Positions 4,536 to 55,542 of a stretch of 64,000 nt of DNA are shown here, one piece after another. How positions within the stretch are numbered: the stretch's first letter is position 1; the number at the start of each line of letters is the position of its first letter. The notes beneath the pieces are model-generated. The model worked only from the letters and a program-made list of their open reading frames with translations. It did not search any database and had not been told where the DNA came from. Made by a program: the position numbers and the translations under genes. The stretch lies in sequence record OR836606.1; one strand, given 5' to 3'.

Positions 4536-6524
4536 TTATCTATTATTGTCTATTTTTAATTCCAATACTTTACCTTTTGGCTCTCTAACTGAAAGATTAT
4601 TTTCATTTTCAGTGATAACCCAAATAACATCAGTTAATAGACCATATTCCACTTCAGGTTCACCAAATCCGTCTGAGAAGAATAGTAATGTGTCATCTTT
4701 TGATACTGAATATTTACGTTTATTATCTTTATTATTCAAGAAATTAAATACAGAACTGAAATAAGTTCCACCACGACCCATTACATAATCATTAAATTGA
4801 TTTGGTCTTTTCACTTCAACTACTTCTTCAACATCAGTTGAGAAGAATAATAAAACTAAATCAATTTTCATATCATTACTAATGTAATATAATTCAGCAA
4901 TAATTTCTTCAATTTCATTTCTACTCATTGAACCTGAAGTATCAATAGCTGCAAATAATTTACCTAATTTTCTACCAGGTAAAGTTCCACGTACATCATT
5001 ACGATAAGGTTGTCTTCTATTTCTTCTTAAGATAGTTTTTGTACTAGAAGAACGTTTTTTACCTACCTTAGCTTTAAGATAATCTTGCCATTTAATCTTA
5101 GGTTTACGTTTTAGAATTTCAATTTGTTCTTTAATATGAGCAGGTGTATCACCACGACTGTTATTACTAGCAGTTTCTAATAAATCATATAACTGATCTT
5201 TCATTCTCTCTTCTGTAGCATCTCCTTCAAGAGGATTAGAATCAAATTTATCTGCATATTTAGAATTTCCATCTAAAGAAGATGACATAGCCATATTACT
5301 TCCCATATCAGAAACATTTTGCCCGTCTTGCATACCGCCATCTTCACATTGCATACCTTGAGAACCTTGTTGCATATTATTTTGAATCATTTGATTTAAT
5401 ATATCTGATTTCATTTCTTGTATTTTATCAGATAAATCACTATTGTCTTTACTATCAAATTTATTATCTGAAGTATTATTTCTCATTGAATCTAGTAAAT
5501 CATTCATTTTCTCTTCTATATTTTTCTGATTTTGAGTATCATTACTGTTGTTTTCATCATTTTGATTCATTTCATCTAATTTATTCATATACTCTTGAGC
5601 TTTATTTTCAAAATCATCAACTTTGTTTTCTTCTAATTTGTTATCTTCTAATTTACTAGATAAATCATTTTTATCTTCAATATCTTTTAAATCTTCTAAC
5701 ATGTCTTTCAACATTTCGTTTTCTTCTTTCAATGAATCTTCATCACGTCCATTTTGTTTTTCTGAAGACTCTTGAATCATATTTTGCATAGATTCACCCA
5801 TAGAATCAAATATATCTTCTTCATTATTCTCTTTGTAGACATCTACTAATTTCTTAATATAATAGTGAGAAGCGTCATTATGATTTAATTTAAAATCTGT
5901 TTTATTAAATTTATCTTGAATATATCTTTCAATCTTGTCTACGTTAGGTGCAATTTCAGGTAAAACTTTTTTACTTGTATTAGCTTCACGTTTACCTAAT
6001 TGAAAGTCTTCTTCAATTTCAAATATAGATAAATCCATTCCTAAGTGACTTAACATTTTCAATTGAGAATCTTCTTTATTTCTTAGCATTCTAAATTCAA
6101 TTAAATGTCCATGAGCTACATGGATAACTTCATGTAGGAATATAGAAACTATTTCTTCATCTTTATCAACCATAGTAGCTAATAATACTGGATTAATGCC
6201 AATCTTATAACCTTTTTCTTCATCAAATACTGAAAAAGTTGGTTCTGGAACCTCAATATCAATAATCTTTTCTACAGTCATTAACATTACTCCATAAATA
6301 TCAACATCGGAAGTATATAACACAAAAATACTATTTTCAATTAATTCTTTTCCAAGTTTAGTTAATTTCTTTTTATCTAATTGTCTATCATTTACAATTG
6401 ATTCTTGTACTTCGTCTAATATTTCTTTTCTAATTACTTTAATTGTTCTATTATCGTTCATTATCAAATTCACTCTCCTAATTATAAAAAATAAATGAAG
6501 ATAATGGAGACTAATAATCTCCAT
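4536..6524 (-). CDS. HEXXH metallopeptidase-like / vWA domain protein (DUF2201-type MoxR partner)
   Basis: FLHEVIH motif, acidic low-complexity linker, C-terminal vWA MIDAS (AIDTSGSMS, GRGGT, FSDG). True start probably the internal MNDNRTIK downstream of an AGGAG SD. Confidence 0.8.
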   Translation of the reverse strand: MEIISLHYLHLFFIIRRVNLIMNDNRTIKVIRKEILDEVQESIVNDRQLDKKKLTKLGKELIENSIFVLYTSDVDIYGVMLMTVEKIIDIEVPEPTFSVFDEEKGYKIGINPVLLATMVDKDEEIVSIFLHEVIHVAHGHLIEFRMLRNKEDSQLKMLSHLGMDLSIFEIEEDFQLGKREANTSKKVLPEIAPNVDKIERYIQDKFNKTDFKLNHNDASHYYIKKLVDVYKENNEEDIFDSMGESMQNMIQESSEKQNGRDEDSLKEENEMLKDMLEDLKDIEDKNDLSSKLEDNKLEENKVDDFENKAQEYMNKLDEMNQNDENNSNDTQNQKNIEEKMNDLLDSMRNNTSDNKFDSKDNSDLSDKIQEMKSDILNQMIQNNMQQGSQGMQCEDGGMQDGQNVSDMGSNMAMSSSLDGNSKYADKFDSNPLEGDATEERMKDQLYDLLETASNNSRGDTPAHIKEQIEILKRKPKIKWQDYLKAKVGKKRSSSTKTILRRNRRQPYRNDVRGTLPGRKLGKLFAAIDTSGSMSRNEIEEIIAELYYISNDMKIDLVLLFFSTDVEEVVEVKRPNQFNDYVMGRGGTYFSSVFNFLNNKDNKRKYSVSKDDTLLFFSDGFGEPEVEYGLLTDVIWVITENENNLSVREPKGKVLELKIDNNR

Positions 6525-37872: not shown

Positions 37873-40236
37873 TTATATACTACAGCTTTCACATTCAACA
37901 ATACCTTGAGAACTTTCATCATGATCAGGTGAATAAATACGAGTATAATACATAGATTTAATACCTTTACTATAAGCATAGTTACGTAATCTACTAATAT
38001 CACGAGTAGTAGTTTCTTTATCTAAAGAATCTTTTTTCCATTCATAAAGTTCTGGATCAAGTTCATTCATTAAGTAAATATTCATAGAAATACCTTGATC
38101 TACGTGATATTGAGCTTCTGAATATAAATCAATCATATCTCTCATATCTAATTGGTAAGCATTTTTCTTAAAGTATTCAAAGTTGTCTGGTGTAATACCT
38201 GGCGCTGGATAGAAAGTAGTGCCTGTTTTACCTTCTACACGTTCTTCAATTAACTCAACAATAGGATGAATTGAAGGCGATACTTCTCTAACATAGCCAA
38301 TAGACCCATTAGGAGCTACAGCTAATCTATTCTGATTGTATAAACCATCCATAACAATATTATTTCTTAATTGTTCCCAATCGCTATCAGATGGAATAAA
38401 AATGTCTTTAAATAATTCTTTAACTTTTTCAGTACGTGGTTGAATATTTTTACCAATATAACGTTTATCAAAATAAGAACCATCAGCATATTCAGTTTTC
38501 TCAAATAAATAGAATGATTCATTTTTCTCTTTAGCAATTTTATTTGATTCAACTAATGTCCAATAATTTAATAACATGAAATAAATATTAGTGAAATCTT
38601 TAGATTCTTCAGAACCATATTGAATGTGGTTTTCAGCTAAGAAAGTGTGTAATCCCATAGCACCTAAACCAACTGTATGAAATAAATCATTTCCTTTTTT
38701 AATTGTAGGTACAGCTTCGATATTAGATTTTTCAGATACTGAATTTAAACTTCTTAACATAGTTCCTACTGATTTACCAAAATCTTCCGATTTCATTAAA
38801 CCGGATACAATAGTTGAAGCTAAGTTACATGAAATATCTGTTCCTGTTTTAACATATTGTTGATTATCATCAACTAATGAAGGATATTGTACCTGCAAAA
38901 TTTCTGAACACAAATTACTCATTTTAATTTTACCATGACTGATTGGATTAGCTCTATTAGCTGTATCAATATTAATGATATAAGGATATCCAGATTCTTG
39001 TTGTAATTTACTAATTGTGGTTTCTAAATCACGAGCATACATTTTATCTTTACTAATACGTTTATCATCTACAAAGATATCATAATAAGTATTAAAGTCA
39101 ATACTGTCGAAATCCAAATCGTAATATTTTTTAATGTCATATGGGCTAAATGTATATAATGATTTATTTTCTTTAACTAACTGATAATATTTGTCTGGAA
39201 CGGTTAAACCTAATGAAATAGTTTTTAATCTCACTTTCTCATCAGCATTTTCTTTCTTAGTATCTAAGAATTTCACTACATCTTTATGGAAAATATTTAA
39301 ATAGAGCGCACCTGCACCATTACGTTGCATTTATATTAACTATATGAATTTCATATAGATTAGACTATATCTTATACTTCTAATAAGTATTATTATATTT
39401 AATCGTTGGACAATCATAAAGATTGATGCTGATTAAGTTTATAAACTTTTCCAGCAATTAATAATATTTATACTGAGCCATTAAAATTAACCCAGTTGAT
39501 TTACATATGATAATGTATCTTCAAATACTTTCATAACCGGAACTACTCCTGAAGCGGCACCTTCTACACCTTTAATTGGATCATTATCTGCACGTAGATT
39601 TGATAAACTGATTCCACAGCCTCCGCCTCTTTTACTTAATTGAGCTACGTTAGTAACAGTTCTATAAATTGAAGCTAGAGAATCTTCCATTGTAACTAAG
39701 AAACAACTTATTAACTCACCAGAACGTTTTCTACCTGAATTGAGAAATGTCGGTGTAGCGGGTTGGAAAGTTCCTGTAATGATTTCTTTAGCGATATTCT
39801 TAGCTAATTCTTCATCTCCATCAGCTAAATATAAAGCTACAAATAAAATTCTATCTTCATATAGTTCTAATAAAATCTCCCCAGCATCATCTTTCATTGC
39901 ATACTGTTCATAGAATTTTTTAGCCCCCAATAAGCGAGTAAATCTATGCTTATAAGCCATTAATTCTTTCATTAATCCTTTAATGAACTCAAAATCATAA
40001 TTATTGATCATATCGCCATCAATATAATCATTATCAACTAGATAATTAATTTTTTCTTTATATGTTTTAAAGTATCTTACATTCTTATTAACTGAATCTA
40101 AGAAATATTTTTTAACTGAAGCTAATTCAAATTCTAAATCTAAATTACCGTCTTTTAATTGTGACCCTCTTGAGTTTAATTCGTTATATGAATAATCTTT
40201 AAATTTTTCTGAAGTTAAATCAATTTCTTTTGGCAT
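37873..40236 (-). CDS. nrdE: Ribonucleotide reductase class Ib alpha subunit, spliced (exons 40236-39490, 39327-37873; ~733 aa)
   Basis: FQPATPTFLN, SCF, SNLCSEI, APNGSI, YYTR motifs; removing 39328-39489 restores NQLG-QRNGAG in frame. Confidence 0.93.
39328..39489 (-). ncRNA. Miniature group I intron in nrdE (162 nt)
   Basis: P1 CUGGGU/GGCUCAG with U-G; P4 UGCUG/CAGCA; R GUCCAACGAUUAAA; S AAGAUAUAGUCU; P8 and P9 hairpins; terminal G. Confidence 0.9.
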
Positions 40237-43693: not shown

Positions 43694-46600
43694 TTAATCT
43701 AATAGATTCATTATTCTTTTTGATTTCTGATCTGGAGAAGAATTGTTATTCTGTAATAAAGGATTACTAGGGAGATTACCATCAATAATTCCACTAATAC
43801 GTTTCATGGATGCAATATCTTTTCTTCTAGCTTGTCTTTCTTTTTCAATTTCTTCTGCATTATCTCCATCTGCAGATACCATTGAACCGTATTTAACTTT
43901 AACAAATTTCTTAATGTCTTTCTCATAGTAATAAGCATATAAACAAAATAGATAACTCATAAGTAAATCGTCATGTCCGCCATCAGGGTGATCAATTCTA
44001 CCTTTTTTCATTTGAAGGGATTTTATTTGTTGGAATAATGGTTTATTATTAACTAAATAAGGTTTTTCTTCAACAATCATTGATAAAATTTCATTGAGCA
44101 TTAGATCTGCTATATAAATTCATGAGTTTAATTTAATTAAAATGAATTTATTCGACTTCGTCATCACTCTGACTTACTTTGCACTTTAAGTTTTTTCGTT
44201 ATAAACTACTTCAACAGAAAGCTTTAATCAAAGCAGAGGTTAAAGCTCTTAAGTCATCGCATTTGGACATTTAGAGGAATAAGACCTCATTTAGCCTGCC
44301 CAACAAAACGCTTACCATACAGTTTTAAATTGACAGCAGCGTTATAATCTCTATCCATTTTATGTCCACAATCACAGGAATACCATCTATCTGATAGTTT
44401 CAACTTATCTTCTTTAGTTAGAATTTGGCCACAATTAGAACATAATTGAGTTGATGGAAACCATCTGTCAGCTACAATAATAGTATTACCATTGCTTTCA
44501 GCTTTTTGTTCAAGTAAAGTCCTAAACTGTCTCCAATTGGACTGTGCGATTGATTTGGATAGTTTTCTATTTTTAATCATATTTGAAACCTGTAAATCTT
44601 CAATAGTTATATATTGATAATTGTTAATCAAGTTAGTAGTAATCTTATGAAGATAATCTTTTTTAATATTATTAATTCTATACCATACTTTTTGTATTTT
44701 GGTTTTCAATACATTGTATTTATTAGAACCATAAACTTTTTTAGATAATCTTTTTTGGTAGTATTTGATTTTATTATAGAGTGAGATTAGTTTATTATTT
44801 AATGAATGGTATTTTTTAAATTTACCGAAATCATCATTAATAATAGCTAAATCTTTTACACCTAAATCAATACCTACATGACTATTGTTATGAATTAATT
44901 TTTTACTGTTATCAACTTTCATTACTATCGAAGCGAAATACCTACCAGCATATTTGGATATAGTTACTTCTTGTATAGAATTATAATCTTTGTTTAAAGG
45001 TTCTTTCATTTTAATTAATGAATTTACACCACGCAATTTAAGTTTATTATTTTTCTCACCTTTAATTTGAATAGCGTAAGGATCTTTCCTATAGAACCTT
45101 GCTCTTAATTTAGATTTCTTTTTAGATTTAAATTTAGGATATTTACCATATCCTTTCCACATCATATTAAATGCTTTACCTAGATCTTCTGTAGAAGTTT
45201 CAATTATCATGATAATTTGATCTTTCTCCCAATCTTCTTTACATTTTTTAAGTTCATCACGAACTCTACGATGAGTTGGTTTTGGTAAAGATTTATCAAT
45301 TTGATAATTATTCCACATATATTTCCATTTATTAAGTGCCTTGTTATAAATATAACGACTATATCCAAAAGCTTGATTAAATATCTCTCGTTGTTCTTTA
45401 TTAGGTTTCAATTCGATTTTTATAGATTTGTACATGTGATTTTCACCTCGATTCATATTTCTAAATGATTTAGAATTTATAATTCATTGTTTAATATATC
45501 GAGGTAAAAATTATTTTAATTAAATTAAACTCACGAATTCCAGAAATCCCTTTCAGGTTCTGTTAAATAGCAAGACTATATCATGATCCATTAAATCAAT
45601 GGACCCCTCGCACTTCGAAAAACTTCTGATGAAGTTAATCTACTCTACTCACTTCACATAGTATTTCAACTATGCTTATTCAGGTTAATCAAACCTGTGC
45701 TTTCGATAGTCGTTGAACGTTTATCCATCATGTGGACACTTCGCTGCTAGACTTCCCATTGTTTACAAACTTTAGCGATCTAGGGTTTTCACCTAGACTT
45801 GTTTTCAGCATAGTTCATCTTAGAGATTTTTTCTGTCTTTCGACTGCATGTCACGCTATCCATTACTGGCATACGTTGTAGCTCTCTAAGCTTTAGGGTT
45901 TTACAAGCAATTCACGAGGTATTTTTACCACTAATTTCATGAATTAAAATTAGTTTAATTTACTTATATAGTAGCAGAGCGTGAAACATGAATTAATAAG
46001 AATTTAAGTCTTAATTCACTTAAAATATCTTAAATTAAAACTGTTTCGTTACTCTAGATTTTTTAGTTGTATCAATACCATATCTTCTTACTTGTTTGGT
46101 AACTTTATTAGTGCTATTTCTAGGAATTTCATTAAATACTTGCTTATTAACTTCAACTTGTTTTTCTGCTACTCTATTCTTTAATGAGTAGAAAATATTG
46201 TCTCCAATACCATCAGTTTGAATCATATCTTCTATCATTACAGTACCTGCATAGTTACGTTCAGGTATTAATACTGCATTAGGTATATAAAGCGTAATAA
46301 GTTCTTTAATTAATTTTCTAAAAGTAGGTCCATTAATTACATTATTTTGGAAAATCATTACAGGCTCTAATGTACCTGGATCAACTACAGTAAATGCAGT
46401 ATTATCTCGACCAAGACCACCAGATATATCAATACCAACAAGCCAGTTCTTTTCATGCATATTATCCATCTTTTTAACCATATAAACATAATAAGTTTTA
46501 CCATTTATTTTAAAATCAATAGTATTATATATCTCTTTATTTGCATATAATGATAATTCTGACATTTGTTGTTCATCAAATAAAGAATCATCGTTACTAA

Positions 46601-48276
46601 ACGCCCATTCAAGAAGTATCTCACGTTTAACTGCTTCTAAAGAACCAATTTGACGTTTTTGCTTTTCTAACCAAGCATCATCTTTACCTAATTCTTTATA
46701 TGAATATTCTATATAGATGAATGAATTGCCTGAATTACTTTCCATATACTCTTCTAATTTTTCATTACCCTCTTCTTCAGAATTAATGTAATAATCATAT
46801 ATTTTTTCTGTCCATTGTGCTGCATCATTCATTTGCTCAAAGAAGAACTGTCCTTGAGGTACATCCAAAGTACTCATATTTTTTATCCTATATTAATTTA
46901 ATATAGATAAGACTATATCTTAGTATATTATAATACCATTTATTATTTAGTCGTTAAACAAGTATTATCAACTTGATGCTGATTGTCTTAATAAAGATTT
47001 TCCAGCAATTAAATAAATAAGCCCAGTTTAATTTTAGGCGTTGTTGTAATTAGAAGACCATAAGGTGTGCCATTTTTCTTAGCTATTGCAGATGCTGTAG
47101 AAACTGCCTTTTAATATTAATCTACATGGATTCCATATAGAATAGACTATATCTTAGTATTATATTAATACTATTTATTATTTAGTCGTTGAACACTATA
47201 AATAGCGATGCTGATCGTCTTAATAAAGATTTTCCAGCAATTAAATAAATAAGCCCGCATTAATTTCAGGCCTCATTGCTTCAAACATTGTTTGGTTGTG
47301 TGGAATGAATGCCCACTCATCCAACCAGACCATAGGTCATTATGTTAACTATATTTAAAAAATATAGATCAGACTATATCATACTCATATAAATAAGTGA
47401 ATATATTTAGTCGTTGAACACTATAATTAGTGATGCTGATTAAGATAATAATCTATTCCAGCAATTAATATTCTTTTACTACTGCAACTATCTACAGTAG
47501 AACCACGCTATTTTAGACTATATCTTCAATTTTATAATTGTCTTTTATTTAGTCGTTGAACACATATGTGATGCTGATCAAATTAAATAATTTGTCCCAG
47601 CAATTAAAAAGATTTATAGCAAGCCATGATATTAACCTGCTTTATTTGCACTCTCACTGTTAGTCGGAGGTGAAACTGTTTTAATAGTATTGTTATTACT
47701 AGCTAATTGAAATTCGTTGATCTTATCTCTATCATTTTTATCTCCAAAATTAGCTAATACATATTCAGGTAAACATTTCTCTTTAAATAAGTTTTTAAGA
47801 CGTTTTAAGTTCTCAGTTGTATCTGAATAAGATTTGTGTGTAAATAACATTGTATAGTTACTACCTACTAATAACATTATCCATGAATAATAACATACTG
47901 CTGAATATGTTTTATAGTGCTGACGTGGAAGCATTATAGCTGTATCTAAATTGTGTAACATACAAAATGTCATCGCCATATTACCTCTATGAAGTTCATA
48001 CATAACCTTACCGCCAGGAACAGGAACTCTTATAACTTCCCTTAAATAAAACCATATATTAATTTTAGCTTCCCTTAATACACGGGTTTTCATTTCATCA
48101 GAAAGTTCAGGATCCCAAGGATCTACTCCTACAAGATTTTTATCATATAGAGTTAATGGAATCCCATAATTTCTGACGTTGTTCTTCTTAAGATCCCTAG
48201 CCACTCTTAAAAAACTAACATTATTAGTTTTATAATCGTAATAAACTTTTTTCTTTAATTTTGGTTTAATTGTCAT
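43694..48276 (-). CDS. terL: Terminase large subunit, spliced from six exons (48276-47635, 47507-47494, 47337-47268, 47107-47036, 46874-46052, 44106-43694; ~677 aa)
   Basis: Walker A-like PRQHYKT; spliced product restores GRGSTVPMVWLDEWAF (Walker B), LLITTTP-STLD, nuclease VGIDISGG and GGHDDLLMS; exon sum 2034 nt is a multiple of 3. Last junction is the least certain. Confidence 0.88.
44287..45435 (-). CDS. tnpB: TnpB RNA-guided endonuclease (IS200/IS605/IS607 OrfB family)
   Basis: N-terminal HTH (KIELKPNKEQ..FGYSRYIYN), RuvC GIDLG / TIEDL / DRDYNAAVNL, Zn finger CSNC..CDC; likely start ATG 45435 after GAGGTG (track start 45456). Confidence 0.93.
   Translation of the reverse strand: MYKSIKIELKPNKEQREIFNQAFGYSRYIYNKALNKWKYMWNNYQIDKSLPKPTHRRVRDELKKCKEDWEKDQIIMIIETSTEDLGKAFNMMWKGYGKYPKFKSKKKSKLRARFYRKDPYAIQIKGEKNNKLKLRGVNSLIKMKEPLNKDYNSIQEVTISKYAGRYFASIVMKVDNSKKLIHNNSHVGIDLGVKDLAIINDDFGKFKKYHSLNNKLISLYNKIKYYQKRLSKKVYGSNKYNVLKTKIQKVWYRINNIKKDYLHKITTNLINNYQYITIEDLQVSNMIKNRKLSKSIAQSNWRQFRTLLEQKAESNGNTIIVADRWFPSTQLCSNCGQILTKEDKLKLSDRWYSCDCGHKMDRDYNAAVNLKLYGKRFVGQAK
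45480..45491 (-). promoter_or_regulatory. Candidate late promoter for tnpB inside an RBS-sequestering hairpin
   Basis: Minus strand AACAATGAATTA lies between hairpin arms 45498-45509 and 45441-45452; the 3' arm contains the GAGGUG SD. Confidence 0.6.
46875..47035 (-). ncRNA. Miniature group I intron T4 in terminase (161 nt)
   Basis: P1 GCCU/GGGC; P AAUUGCUGGAAA, Q AAUCAGCAUC, R GUUUAACGACUAAA, S AAGAUAUAGUCU; ends AUG; restores TTTP-STLD. Confidence 0.85.
47108..47267 (-). ncRNA. Miniature group I intron T3 in terminase (160 nt)
   Basis: P1 AGGCCU/GGGCUU; full P/Q/R/S set; terminal G; restores EAMRP-AVSTA. Confidence 0.88.
47338..47493 (-). ncRNA. Miniature group I intron T2 in terminase (156 nt)
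   Basis: P1 CUACUGU/GCAGUAG; P/Q/R/S; phase-2 junction GT|A restores GSTVPMVWLDE. Confidence 0.9.
47508..47634 (-). ncRNA. Miniature group I intron T1 in terminase (127 nt, no P9)
   Basis: P1 GCAGGU/GGCUUGC; P3 UCUUUU/AAAAGA; P4; R GUUCAACGACUAAA; S AAGAUAUAGUCU followed only by AAAAUAG; restores KAG-RG. Confidence 0.88.
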
Positions 48277-54180: not shown

Positions 54181-55542
54181 ATGTCTAAAGATATAAAAGC
54201 TTATCTTATTAATGAATCTAACACAACTTCTCAACCAGAAGTAGTTCAAGATAATAATAAATCGGTTAGATTCATTGCTGAGTTACAAGAAGCTGATAGA
54301 CAAAACCGTAATGGTCGTGTTTATCGTAAAGATGTTATTCAAAGTGGTTTAGATAGTCCAGTAATACAAGAAAAATTAGCAAGAAAAACTTTTTATGGTG
54401 AGTTTTAGGTTAAATGGCTCACATTAAATTATATTAATTGCTGGAAAAGATTATTATCTTAATCAGCATCAACTTAATACAAGTTGTTCAACGACTAAAT
54501 ATATAGCCTAGATGATATAGTCTAACCTTTATTAAAATGATAAAGAATAATAATTTGCAGGACATCCTTTAAGTGATGAACCTAAACGACAAATGTATAT
54601 TGATCAACGTAATATTTCTCATATCGTTACTAGAACATGGTGGAATGGTAATAAATTAATGGCAGAAGTAGAAACGGCACAAACAGCAGCTGGTAAAGAT
54701 ATGAAAGGTTTAATCGGACAAAAGTCTGACGTATCTTTCTCAATGCGTGGTTTCAGTAAAATTAATAGAACACCTTCTGGCGAAGTTGAAGTTACTAAAC
54801 CTTTAAGATTAATCTGTTAAATTGTAGCAGCTTTATATAGAAATATATATTGAAAAAGAATATTAATTGCTAAGAAGTTTAATTAAGCCAATTAGCATCA
54901 ACTTAATACAAGTTGTTCAACGACTAAATATATTTACTCTTAATAAGAGTATGATATAGTCTAATCTTAATAGTAAGATCTATTAAGTTAATATAATGTA
55001 CGATAAAATAAACCTTGTCGCTTCTTAAAGCAATTTAAGAATGATAAAACTATTAATTGCTAAAATCTTTTATTAAAGTAATTAGCATCAACTTAATAAA
55101 AGTTGTTCAAAGACTAAATATAGTTTATCCTTTTATAGGATAATGATATAGTCTGATCTATATTATACTAATATAGATAACATAAATGTGGGTAGTAATT
55201 CCATCTCATCAAGATTCTTACATTCAAAATATTATTTCAGAAGGACACAATAATTATAATCCTAATGATTTACAAATGGTAAATGAATCAATTGATATGT
55301 TCACTAATGGTAAAATTACTGAATTTTCTCCTAGAGAAGTTTTAACTTATATTAAAGAAAATTCAGATAATGTAAAATACATTGCTGAAGATATGGGGTT
55401 TGCTGGAGTTGATGAATCTAATATCAGTTATGATAAAGGATCTCAATTAGCTTCAATTAGAGAAAGTAATAAAACTATTAAAGTTTTCTTAGAAGAATCT
55501 GTTCTTAATGGACTTGATGATTTCTATAGAAACTTTAAATAA
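54181..55542 (+). CDS. Prohead (capsid maturation) protease, spliced from four exons (54181-54403, 54558-54817, 54999-55004, 55189-55542; 280 aa)
   Basis: ADRQNRNGRVY; spliced YGESGHP (catalytic His), FSMRG (Ser), LICYDWVVIPSH (Asp); exon sum 843 nt in frame. Confidence 0.9.
54404..54557 (+). ncRNA. Miniature group I intron P1 in prohead protease (154 nt)
   Basis: P1 GUGAGU/GGCUCAC; AAUUGCUGGAAA, AAUCAGCAUC, GUUCAACGACUAAA, GAUAUAGUCU; terminal G. Confidence 0.88.
54818..54998 (+). ncRNA. Miniature group I intron P2 in prohead protease (181 nt)
   Basis: P1 CUGU/GCAG; P4 variant UGCUA/UAGCA; R and S motifs; ends AUG. Confidence 0.88.
55005..55188 (+). ncRNA. Miniature group I intron P3 in prohead protease (184 nt)
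   Basis: P1 CGAU/GUCG; P4 UGCUA/UAGCA; R GUUCAAAGACUAAA; S GAUAUAGUCU; ends AUG. Confidence 0.88.

Follow-up and report, generated by a model that had tools for sequence, protein, structure and literature searches.

Compact group I introns predicted in the large terminase gene of the Staphylococcus jumbo phage LY01

Introduction

The large terminase gene (TerL) of the Staphylococcus jumbo phage LY01 is annotated in GenBank as two 'hypothetical protein' fragments only. The stretch of DNA analyzed here, referred to as the window, comprises 64,000 nucleotides that are 100% identical to LY01 (OR836606.1) and corresponds to record positions 186001-250000; window position n is record position n + 186000. 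A preliminary description of the window proposed that the part of TerL encoding the ATPase is interrupted by four miniature group I introns (I1-I4) of 127, 156, 160 and 161 nt that lack open reading frames (ORFs) and are separated by exons of 14, 70 and 72 nt. These sizes and their coordinates are exact to the base, and the introns are indeed devoid of ORFs. All four lie on the minus strand within 760 bp of TerL. The DNA makes it very probable that they are true group I introns, spliced at these junctions. Their core is of the phage type. The stretch that they interrupt encodes the ATPase and is the best conserved of the gene.

Exon structure of the terminase gene

The PHROG family of the terminase large subunit matches both the N-terminal fragment of LY01 (E 2.5e-55) and the intact homologue of the sibling phage S6 (E 3.9e-54). 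Pfam and PDB sequence searches with TerL returned nothing useful, the protein being too divergent to be reached. The S6 gene is a single uninterrupted coding sequence (CDS) of 677 codons, and the joined exons of LY01 (Table 1) align with its DNA without a gap; excision of the introns in silico restores the host gene. The spliced frame reads ...ANKAG/RGSTV/PMVWLDEWAFIPHNQTMFEAMRP/AVSTASAIAKKNGTPYGLLITTTP/STLDVPQGQ, with slashes at the exon boundaries, and is identical to the S6 protein across all four junctions. The TerL genes of the sibling phages S6, UFV_DC4 and SA1 are uninterrupted, and the spliced LY01 sequence is collinear with all three. The peptide predicted in the preliminary description, for which a mismatch with an intron-less homologue would have counted against splicing, thus agrees with each of them. 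The exon 3 peptide contains the motif WLDEW, which we take to be the Walker-B-type motif of the ATPase.

Many genes of the MarsHill-like phages are disrupted by introns, TerL among them, and TerL is the one gene whose mature peptide 'could not be confidently reconstructed' (Korn et al.). The predicted exon map in Table 1 solves the structure of TerL for the Staphylococcus clade, which the MarsHill authors could not do.

Table 1. Predicted exons and introns of LY01 TerL, occupancy of the intron sites among sibling phages, and related introns elsewhere in LY01 (window positions unless marked as record positions)
Feature	Position	Strand	Description
TerL exon 1	47635-48276	-	214 codons, ends ...ANKAG; 99% identical to S6 TerL aa 1-214
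Intron I1	47508-47634	-	127 nt; no P2, no P9; ends in G
TerL exon 2	47494-47507	-	14 nt, CGUGGUUCUACUGU; codes RGST and part of V
Intron I2	47338-47493	-	156 nt; P4-P8, single P9 hairpin
TerL exon 3	47268-47337	-	70 nt; codes (V)PMVWLDEWAFIPHNQTMFEAMRP; peptide identical to S6
Intron I3	47108-47267	-	160 nt; P4-P8, single P9
TerL exon 4	47036-47107	-	72 nt; codes AVSTASAIAKKNGTPYGLLITTTP
Intron I4	46875-47035	-	161 nt; P3-P8, single P9
TerL exon 5	46052-46874	-	STLDVPQGQ... to ...GIDTTKKSR
Fifth TerL interruption	44107-46051	-	~1.95 kb, IStron-like
TerL exon 6	43694-44106	-	C-terminal end, DLMLNEIL...; 93% identical to S6 aa 541-677
Site 0	15 nt upstream of site 1		153 nt in Machias, PB50
Site 1	after ..KAG		127 nt in LY01, MarsHill; 206 nt in AH12; 1253 nt in Madawaska
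Site 2	between the second and third bases of the Val-219 codon, downstream of RGST		156-159 nt in LY01, MarsHill, Madawaska; 1210 nt in Machias, PB50
Site 3	after MRP		160 nt in LY01; 159 nt in MarsHill
Site 4	after TTTP		161 nt in LY01; 156 nt in AH12; ~1.5 kb full-size ORF-bearing introns in PALS_2, Machias
nrdE (class Ib ribonucleotide reductase alpha subunit), split by a family member	39328-39489	-	162 nt
Head maturation protease, family members	54408-54556, 54840-54998, 55030-55187	+	Two parted by a ~31-nt exon
P8-less copies	record 176338-176199, 165158-165017, 65121-64966, 64374-64204		Loci L014, L012

Anatomy of the four introns

Identification of the four introns as group I relies on matches to the Rfam model RF00028, on core strings that can be aligned among them, and on junctions that are exact when compared with the intron-less homologues. 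Each intron carries its guide sequence (internal guide sequence, IGS) 8-12 nt from its 5′ end, in which a G pairs with the exon U at position -1; for I1, this U is the last base of exon 1, at 47635. The P1 helix joins exon AGCAGGU to IGS GCUUGCU (47624-47618) in I1 and exon CUACUGU to IGS GCAGUAG (47485-47479) in I2, with seven contiguous pairs each, and exon AGGCCU to IGS GGGCUU (47256-47251) in I3, with six. All four introns end in G (omega-G), and the U-G pair of P1 and the terminal G that had been described are present in every one.

The catalytic core is built from P3, P4 (UGCUGG/UCAGCA), P5, P6, P7 (GACUA/UAGUC, which forms a pseudoknot with P3) and P8, and these helices are found in I1-I4. 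P3 pairs UCUUUU/AAAAGA in I1, GAAUAU/AUAUUC in I2 and UAUUUAUU/AAUAAAUA in I3; P8 of I1 is CAAUU/AAUUG. The joining strands UAAU, GUUCAAC, AAU and AAGAUA (AUGAUA in I2) are shared, and the core strings AAUUGCUGG, AUCAGCA, GUUCAACGACUAAAU and GAUAUAGUC each occur four times and in register, which is far beyond chance.

The periphery is almost entirely missing, and the architecture given in the preliminary description, consisting of P1, P3-P8 and at most one P9 hairpin without P2, P5abc or P7 extensions, is borne out in full. P2 is absent because nothing from the guide sequence to P3 folds into a hairpin, and P5abc because P5 is a hairpin of 4-6 bp. P7.1 and P7.2 are absent because the 13-15 nt from the 3′ strand of P3 to J8/7 (the AAGAUAUAGUC / AUGAUAUAGUC string) form one P8 hairpin. 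I1 has no P9, as just 8 nt (UAAAAUAG) remain after P7. The peripheral P7.1/P7.2 and P2, and often P9.1, that wrap the core in typical phage subgroup IA introns (Twort, T4 td type) are not found in I1-I4, and the four are therefore not filed as ordinary IA2 members.

The short exons are tightly bound up with the introns. In exon 2, CGUGGU can form P10 with AUCAUG of I1, as read by hand, and CUACUGU serves I2 as its P1 strand, so that the flanking introns together take up 13 of the 14 exon nucleotides. I3 and I4 are nearly identical in their 5′ halves (the first ~50 core nt) and have the same guide, GGGCUU, with both sites ending in GCCU. Such a likeness would be expected if one intron gave rise to the other by guide-directed insertion (reverse splicing) or by gene conversion.

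Covariance models and the family in LY01

The gathering threshold of RF00028 is 50 bits, and E-value mode is needed to reveal matches to the introns studied here. I3 scores 47.8 bits (E 8e-11), I1 42.1 (E 4e-9) and I4 26.5 (E 2e-4), while I2 is matched in two pieces (E 0.12 and 4.9) with a score of 17.1 bits. These low values reflect the deletion of P2 and the shortening of P6 and P8, not mismatches in the core. Since all four fall below the Rfam threshold, they are missed by routine annotation.

A family covariance model was built from the four introns and searched against the window with filters off. It scores I1 at 111.7, I2 at 135.9, I3 at 157.6 and I4 at 131.8 bits, and finds exactly eight copies, the number that the preliminary description had referred to: I1-I4, one at 39329-39487 (minus strand) and three within 54408-55187 (plus strand), with the next matches at noise level. 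A piecewise scan of the LY01 genome with the same model yielded 34 full-length copies, often clustered, that fall into ~15 runs when neighbors within 1.5 kb of each other are grouped; the genes affected include gyrB, nrdE, TerL and the head protease. The genome of S6, whose TerL is ~94% identical to that of LY01, has zero copies of the family.

The alignment of the 34 copies, with P7 added as a pseudoknot, was used to count covariation. Standard pairs occupy 96.0% of cells compared with 76.4% in column shuffles and 29-45% when the partners are slid by 1-3 columns, percentages that are somewhat inflated by the fitting of the alignment to the model, though the margin is wide. Double-sided changes number 218 against 64 expected. 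Covariation is rich in P3, P5, P6, P8 and P9, and P4 and P7 hardly vary. Covariation within the predicted helices thus strongly backs the fold.

Mapping against S6 gave exact bounds for 20 further LY01 copies (140-188 nt), a number restricted by the merging of tandem introns with tiny exons in such mapping. All 20 can be read with a U at -1 and a G as their last base, a result that is partly circular because the U/G rule served to pick among near-equivalent alignment shifts. With I1 and I2 included, the mapped sizes are 127, 140, 142, 153, 153, 154, 156, 156, 160, 161, 161, 162, 165, 171, 173, 177, 180, 184, 184, 185 and 188 nt. Cognate exons and guides form a mean of 5.24 contiguous P1 pairs, as opposed to 3.38 ± 0.21 when permuted (maximum 4.2 in 1000 permutations).

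Structural elements vary within the family. A subfamily without P8 has only 13 nt (AUAUU-ACUAAG-AA) in place of the 3′ strand of P3 and P8, and its members measure 140, 142, 156 and 171 nt; such copies occur in genes such as gyrB. A second copy without P9 lies at record positions 27498-27338. As judged from the predicted folds, the family is one that shows modular loss of P2, P8 or P9.

The copy that splits nrdE has a 5′ exon heptamer, ACUGGGU, and a guide, GCUCAGU, that are identical to those of TerL site 1 in the Bacillus jumbo phage AR9, and the copy starting at record position 165158 follows the same heptamer with the guide GCUCAGA. In S6, the head maturation protease gene carries an ORF for a LAGLIDADG endonuclease (S6_0080), which suggests that an ORF-bearing intron is present in that gene.

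Intron sites among sibling phages

The occupancy of the TerL sites is patchy (Table 1). I1-I4 lack ORFs, and ORF-bearing introns occupy corresponding sites in Madawaska, Machias, PB50 and PALS_2. The site 1 intron of Madawaska has an endonuclease ORF in the P1 loop; in Machias and PB50, the site 2 intron combines the mini core of the family with an endonuclease ORF placed in P8. The guides follow synonymous changes in the exons: an Ala codon of GCA, GCC or GCG at site 1 is matched by the guide GCUUGCU, GCCGGCU or GCUCGCU (LY01, Madawaska and AH12), and exon ACG or ACA at site 4 by the guide GGGC or GGGU (LY01 and PALS_2). Machias and PB50 harbor an additional ~171-nt intron (L007 3232-3403 and L008 ~5738-5909) ~4 nt upstream of LY01 site 3, whose in-frame junction (AG/A CCA, Arg-Pro) would follow G rather than U.

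Divergence between LY01 and S6 TerL is concentrated at the sites, with 41 differences in the 190 nt around them (window 47036-47700 compared with L001 3628-3817) against 92 in 1448 nt elsewhere. The sole amino-acid difference within those 190 nt, Ser/Ala, affects residue 207, which precedes site 1; the rest are synonymous. At three of the four S6 positions equivalent to the splice-site U, the base is not U. Homing with co-conversion, selection on P1 and P10, or recoding of the target site would produce such site-centered divergence.

A blastn search with I3 found similar places in LY01 (25), AH12 (20), Machias (19), PB50 (16), Madawaska (10) and MarsHill (8), and none in S6, DC4, PALS_2 or SA1. 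The paper describing DC4 reports no Rfam introns in that genome. Beyond this group, a scan of IMG/VR with a strict core pattern was matched by only nine contigs, a few of which have compact matches of ~160-176 nt. Compact core matches of ~175 nt, some of them in tandem, occur in unrelated viral contigs of IMG/VR with 31-44% guanine plus cytosine (GC) (L022 1504-1679 and 3385-3559; L025 363-536). Compact cores therefore exist elsewhere, yet they are not common at the stringency of that scan. Small core-only group I introns may be commoner than annotation implies.

The fifth interruption and TnpB genes

Downstream of I4, TerL is interrupted a fifth time. This insertion has full-size group I core strings (AAUUGCUUG at 45912, GUUCAACGACUAUCG near 45720 and AUGAUAUAGUC at 45582), followed by a TnpB ORF (45456-44287, with OrfB_IS605 and Cas12f1-like TNB domains) and a 3′ tail of ~180 nt. 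An IStron is a group I intron fused to an element of the IS200/IS605 family (Tourasse et al. 2014, PMC4227781). The combination of a group I core and TnpB makes the fifth interruption IStron-like, with junction bases that are ambiguous: at the 5′ end, the frame requires a junction after G (AGAG/UAACG), and the best P1 places it one base later. The likeness to IStrons, a group I core and then a TnpB gene within an essential gene, is limited to this neighboring interruption and does not extend to the four mini-introns, and Rfam gave no match to the fifth interruption. LY01 has six TnpB genes without a match in S6. The three that were located are all in or beside intron-rich genes, namely the fifth TerL interruption, the gyrB fragments, and the intron pair at 33253-33810 of L014.

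Splicing mechanism and alternative explanations

Group I introns of this design would be removed after transcription by the canonical two-step transesterification initiated by guanosine. The guide would pair with the last 4-7 nt of the exon to form P1, with the U.G wobble at the cleavage site; the P3-P8 core and the P7 pseudoknot would supply the guanosine-binding and catalytic site, and the terminal G would set the 3′ splice site. Ligation of the exons would yield an mRNA for the same TerL as in the intron-less siblings. Because LY01 and MarsHill are propagated isolates that share I1-I3, their TerL RNA must be spliced; a terminase is needed for DNA packaging, and the 14-nt exon codes for conserved residues. 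Splicing in vivo would proceed by the active site of the ribozyme itself, with no dedicated maturase expected, and folding would probably be aided only by non-specific factors, such as Mg2+, general RNA chaperones, and growth below 37 °C. Homing probably carried the family into conserved sites during co-infection, with endonucleases supplied by ORF-bearing copies at those sites in sibling phages, and guide-directed reverse splicing is a possible route to new sites. Sequence comparison itself establishes the anatomy, the precise junctions, the conserved pairing and the occurrence in the different phages; the catalysis, the independence from a helper and this mode of spread are inferred.

Several observations weigh against this explanation, in addition to the limits on the pairing percentages and boundaries given above. 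Splicing is deduced from DNA sequence. At the gathering threshold, Rfam found nothing over the whole window, none of the eight copies included. P1 of I4, made of exon CGCCU and IGS GGGCUU (47024-47019), has only 4 contiguous pairs including the U.G. The predicted minimum free energy of I1, -16.5 kcal/mol, is no better than that of shuffled sequence (z = -0.2), and I2-I4, at -27 to -30 kcal/mol (z -1.6 to -2.9), are of marginal predicted stability. The GC content of the introns is 20-28%. Finally, peripheral contacts of the tetraloop-receptor type were not seen in the LY01 introns, which makes unaided folding doubtful, especially for I1. These phages form no plaques at 37 °C (Korn et al.), and a low growth temperature may help weak folds.

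The preliminary description suggested that a trans-acting protein or RNA helper may be needed. In its strict form, which is held to be less likely than not, this alternative has the introns degenerate, retaining an active-site core that is unable to fold alone, and splicing dependent on a dedicated trans-acting helper, either a phage or host protein serving as maturase or chaperone or another RNA. The absence of P2, P5abc, P7.1/7.2 and P9.x, together with the lack of even P9 or P8 in some copies, fits this alternative; the marginal predicted stability, with I1 no better than shuffled, makes the need plausible, and 34 similar copies would make one common helper economical. Engineered core-only group I ribozymes, in contrast, keep their activity at raised Mg2+. 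The core pairings and joining strands are also tightly conserved, as expected of an active ribozyme.

A precedent for helper dependence is found in the 'degenerate' group I introns in the ribosomal DNA of lichen fungi, which are shortened by ~100 nt relative to related introns and are spliced out in living cells yet do not splice by themselves in vitro (PMC8527467). They differ in being eukaryotic and nuclear and in having lost catalytically important parts, whereas the LY01 family keeps all core helices and joining strands, with the exception of copies without P8 or P9. As for candidates, no maturase-like or homing-endonuclease gene emerged when the gene content of LY01 was searched for what S6 lacks; the LY01 ORFs without an S6 match comprise six TnpB and unrelated ORFs, with no LAGLIDADG or other RNA-binding gene among them, and a dedicated, family-specific helper is consequently left without a candidate in this set. 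The phage does encode a cold-shock-type protein (WRM43407.1), but its gene has a match in S6, which is without the family. A shared phage factor, such as this protein, or a host factor is a possible helper.

It is unlikely that the introns are decaying relics, recently inactivated, whose inefficient splicing is tolerated or used to throttle late gene expression. The modular loss of P9 and P8 resembles a deletion series (1253, 206 and 127 nt at site 1; 1210 and ~156 nt at site 2), and the sibling phages have lost the introns or never had them. Against this stand the identities of the genes that carry introns (TerL, GyrB, NrdE and the head protease), for which inefficient splicing, compounded over as many as four or five introns in one gene, would entail severe loss of product. 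The near-invariant core over 34 copies and the compensatory changes in the helices point to ongoing selection for function, and the I1 sequences of LY01 and MarsHill agree at 124 of 127 nt.

A reading in which the segments stay in the RNA, either as spacers between separate terminase polypeptides or as intergenic regulatory or repeat elements, is very improbable: GenBank lists only separate N- and C-terminal CDSs in LY01, MarsHill, AH12, Machias and PB50, and phrog_32359, a 'terminase large subunit' family of 210 positions, ends exactly at site 1, but exons 2-4 come with neither a start codon nor a ribosome-binding site and encode RGSTVPMVWLDEW...ITTTP, which is contiguous in S6, DC4 and SA1, and the exons are kept at the protein level while the intron helices covary as RNA and the guides covary with exon codons. 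The family phrog_32359 itself appears to have been assembled from the N-terminal fragments of intron-split genes. Inteins are ruled out by stop codons in all frames and by covariation of the RNA type, group II introns by the absence of domains V and VI and by the wrong size, and translational bypassing by the presence of four gaps of 127-161 nt.

True group I introns thus remain the best explanation. A more far-reaching proposal, which can be offered only tentatively and is rather doubtful as a whole, is that they are the smallest natural self-splicing group I ribozymes seen so far and belong to a 34-copy family that resembles miniature inverted-repeat transposable elements (MITEs), having colonized ~15 loci after the split from the copy-free siblings, partly by guide-directed reverse splicing. 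According to this proposal, general chaperones at most would be needed for splicing of the 127-nt intron, which has neither P2 nor P9, and of its 140-142 nt sisters, which have neither P2 nor P8, and the reverse transcriptase of the phage itself would possibly assist the spread, as opposed to site-specific endonucleases alone. A literature search for the smallest known group I intron gave no usable comparison value.

Relation to known introns

The closest known system is TerL of AR9, whose CDS (AR9_g121 in KU878088) is annotated as five joined pieces. Along with the survey by Korn et al., it confirms the earlier remark that intron-rich genes had been noted in this phage group, and because of this annotation a four-intron terminase is not new there. 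AR9/PBS1 and LY01 share the gene, the same ~60-codon ATPase stretch, four introns in a row with short exons, and similar core strings. Of the four insertion points in AR9, two coincide with sites of LY01, namely site 1 (after the ..G codon) and site 4 (after TTTP), and two lie elsewhere. The introns of AR9 are ~280-312 nt long, with the sizes of introns 2 and 3 approximate and not to the base, whereas those of LY01 are about half that, at 127-161 nt and 17-48 bits. All four AR9 introns pass Rfam (92.7, 83.2, 82.3 and 70.6 bits) and hence match the whole consensus, including P2, P6 and P8, which are shortened or gapped in LY01. The mini-family model matches them weakly, at 29-36 bits.

The introns of the Staphylococcus phage Twort are ~250 nt or more, with P7.1/P7.2 peripheral elements that are seen in the crystal structure. 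They resemble those of LY01 in that several ORF-less group I introns lie in one gene of the structural module with very short exons; the LY01 family differs in lacking P7.1/P7.2, and there is no DNA similarity at the sensitivity of blastn. The Azoarcus intron is likewise a compact natural group I intron, made of the core plus a minimal periphery, in which P2 and P9 form tetraloop-receptor contacts; it is GC-rich and very stable. Compared with it, the LY01 introns are 40-80 nt shorter, have 20-28% GC, and are without P2 or a recognizable tetraloop-receptor pair.

Significance

The new features are the half-size, core-only architecture, the natural variants without P9 or P8, the copy number, and the exon map for the Staphylococcus clade. 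The finding is of real interest to specialists in ribozymes and RNA structure and to annotators of phage genomes, and is not categorically new. If the introns do self-splice, they would set a new natural lower bound for the size of a group I ribozyme; if they do not splice alone, they would point to a splicing helper, not yet described, that operates in a bacterial virus. The natural deletion series, in which P9 and P8 are each present or absent and an ORF may sit in the P1 loop or in P8, offers a means of asking what the core needs for folding and catalysis, and may be of use in structural work and in compact ribozyme tools, e.g. the production of circular RNA by permuted introns.

All 34 copies are invisible to routine pipelines, and for this reason essential phage genes, those of the terminase, gyrase B, ribonucleotide reductase, and head protease, are annotated as fragments. 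The contrast between 34 copies in LY01 and none in S6 provides a clean system for studying the speed at which introns invade, or are lost from, a phage genome.

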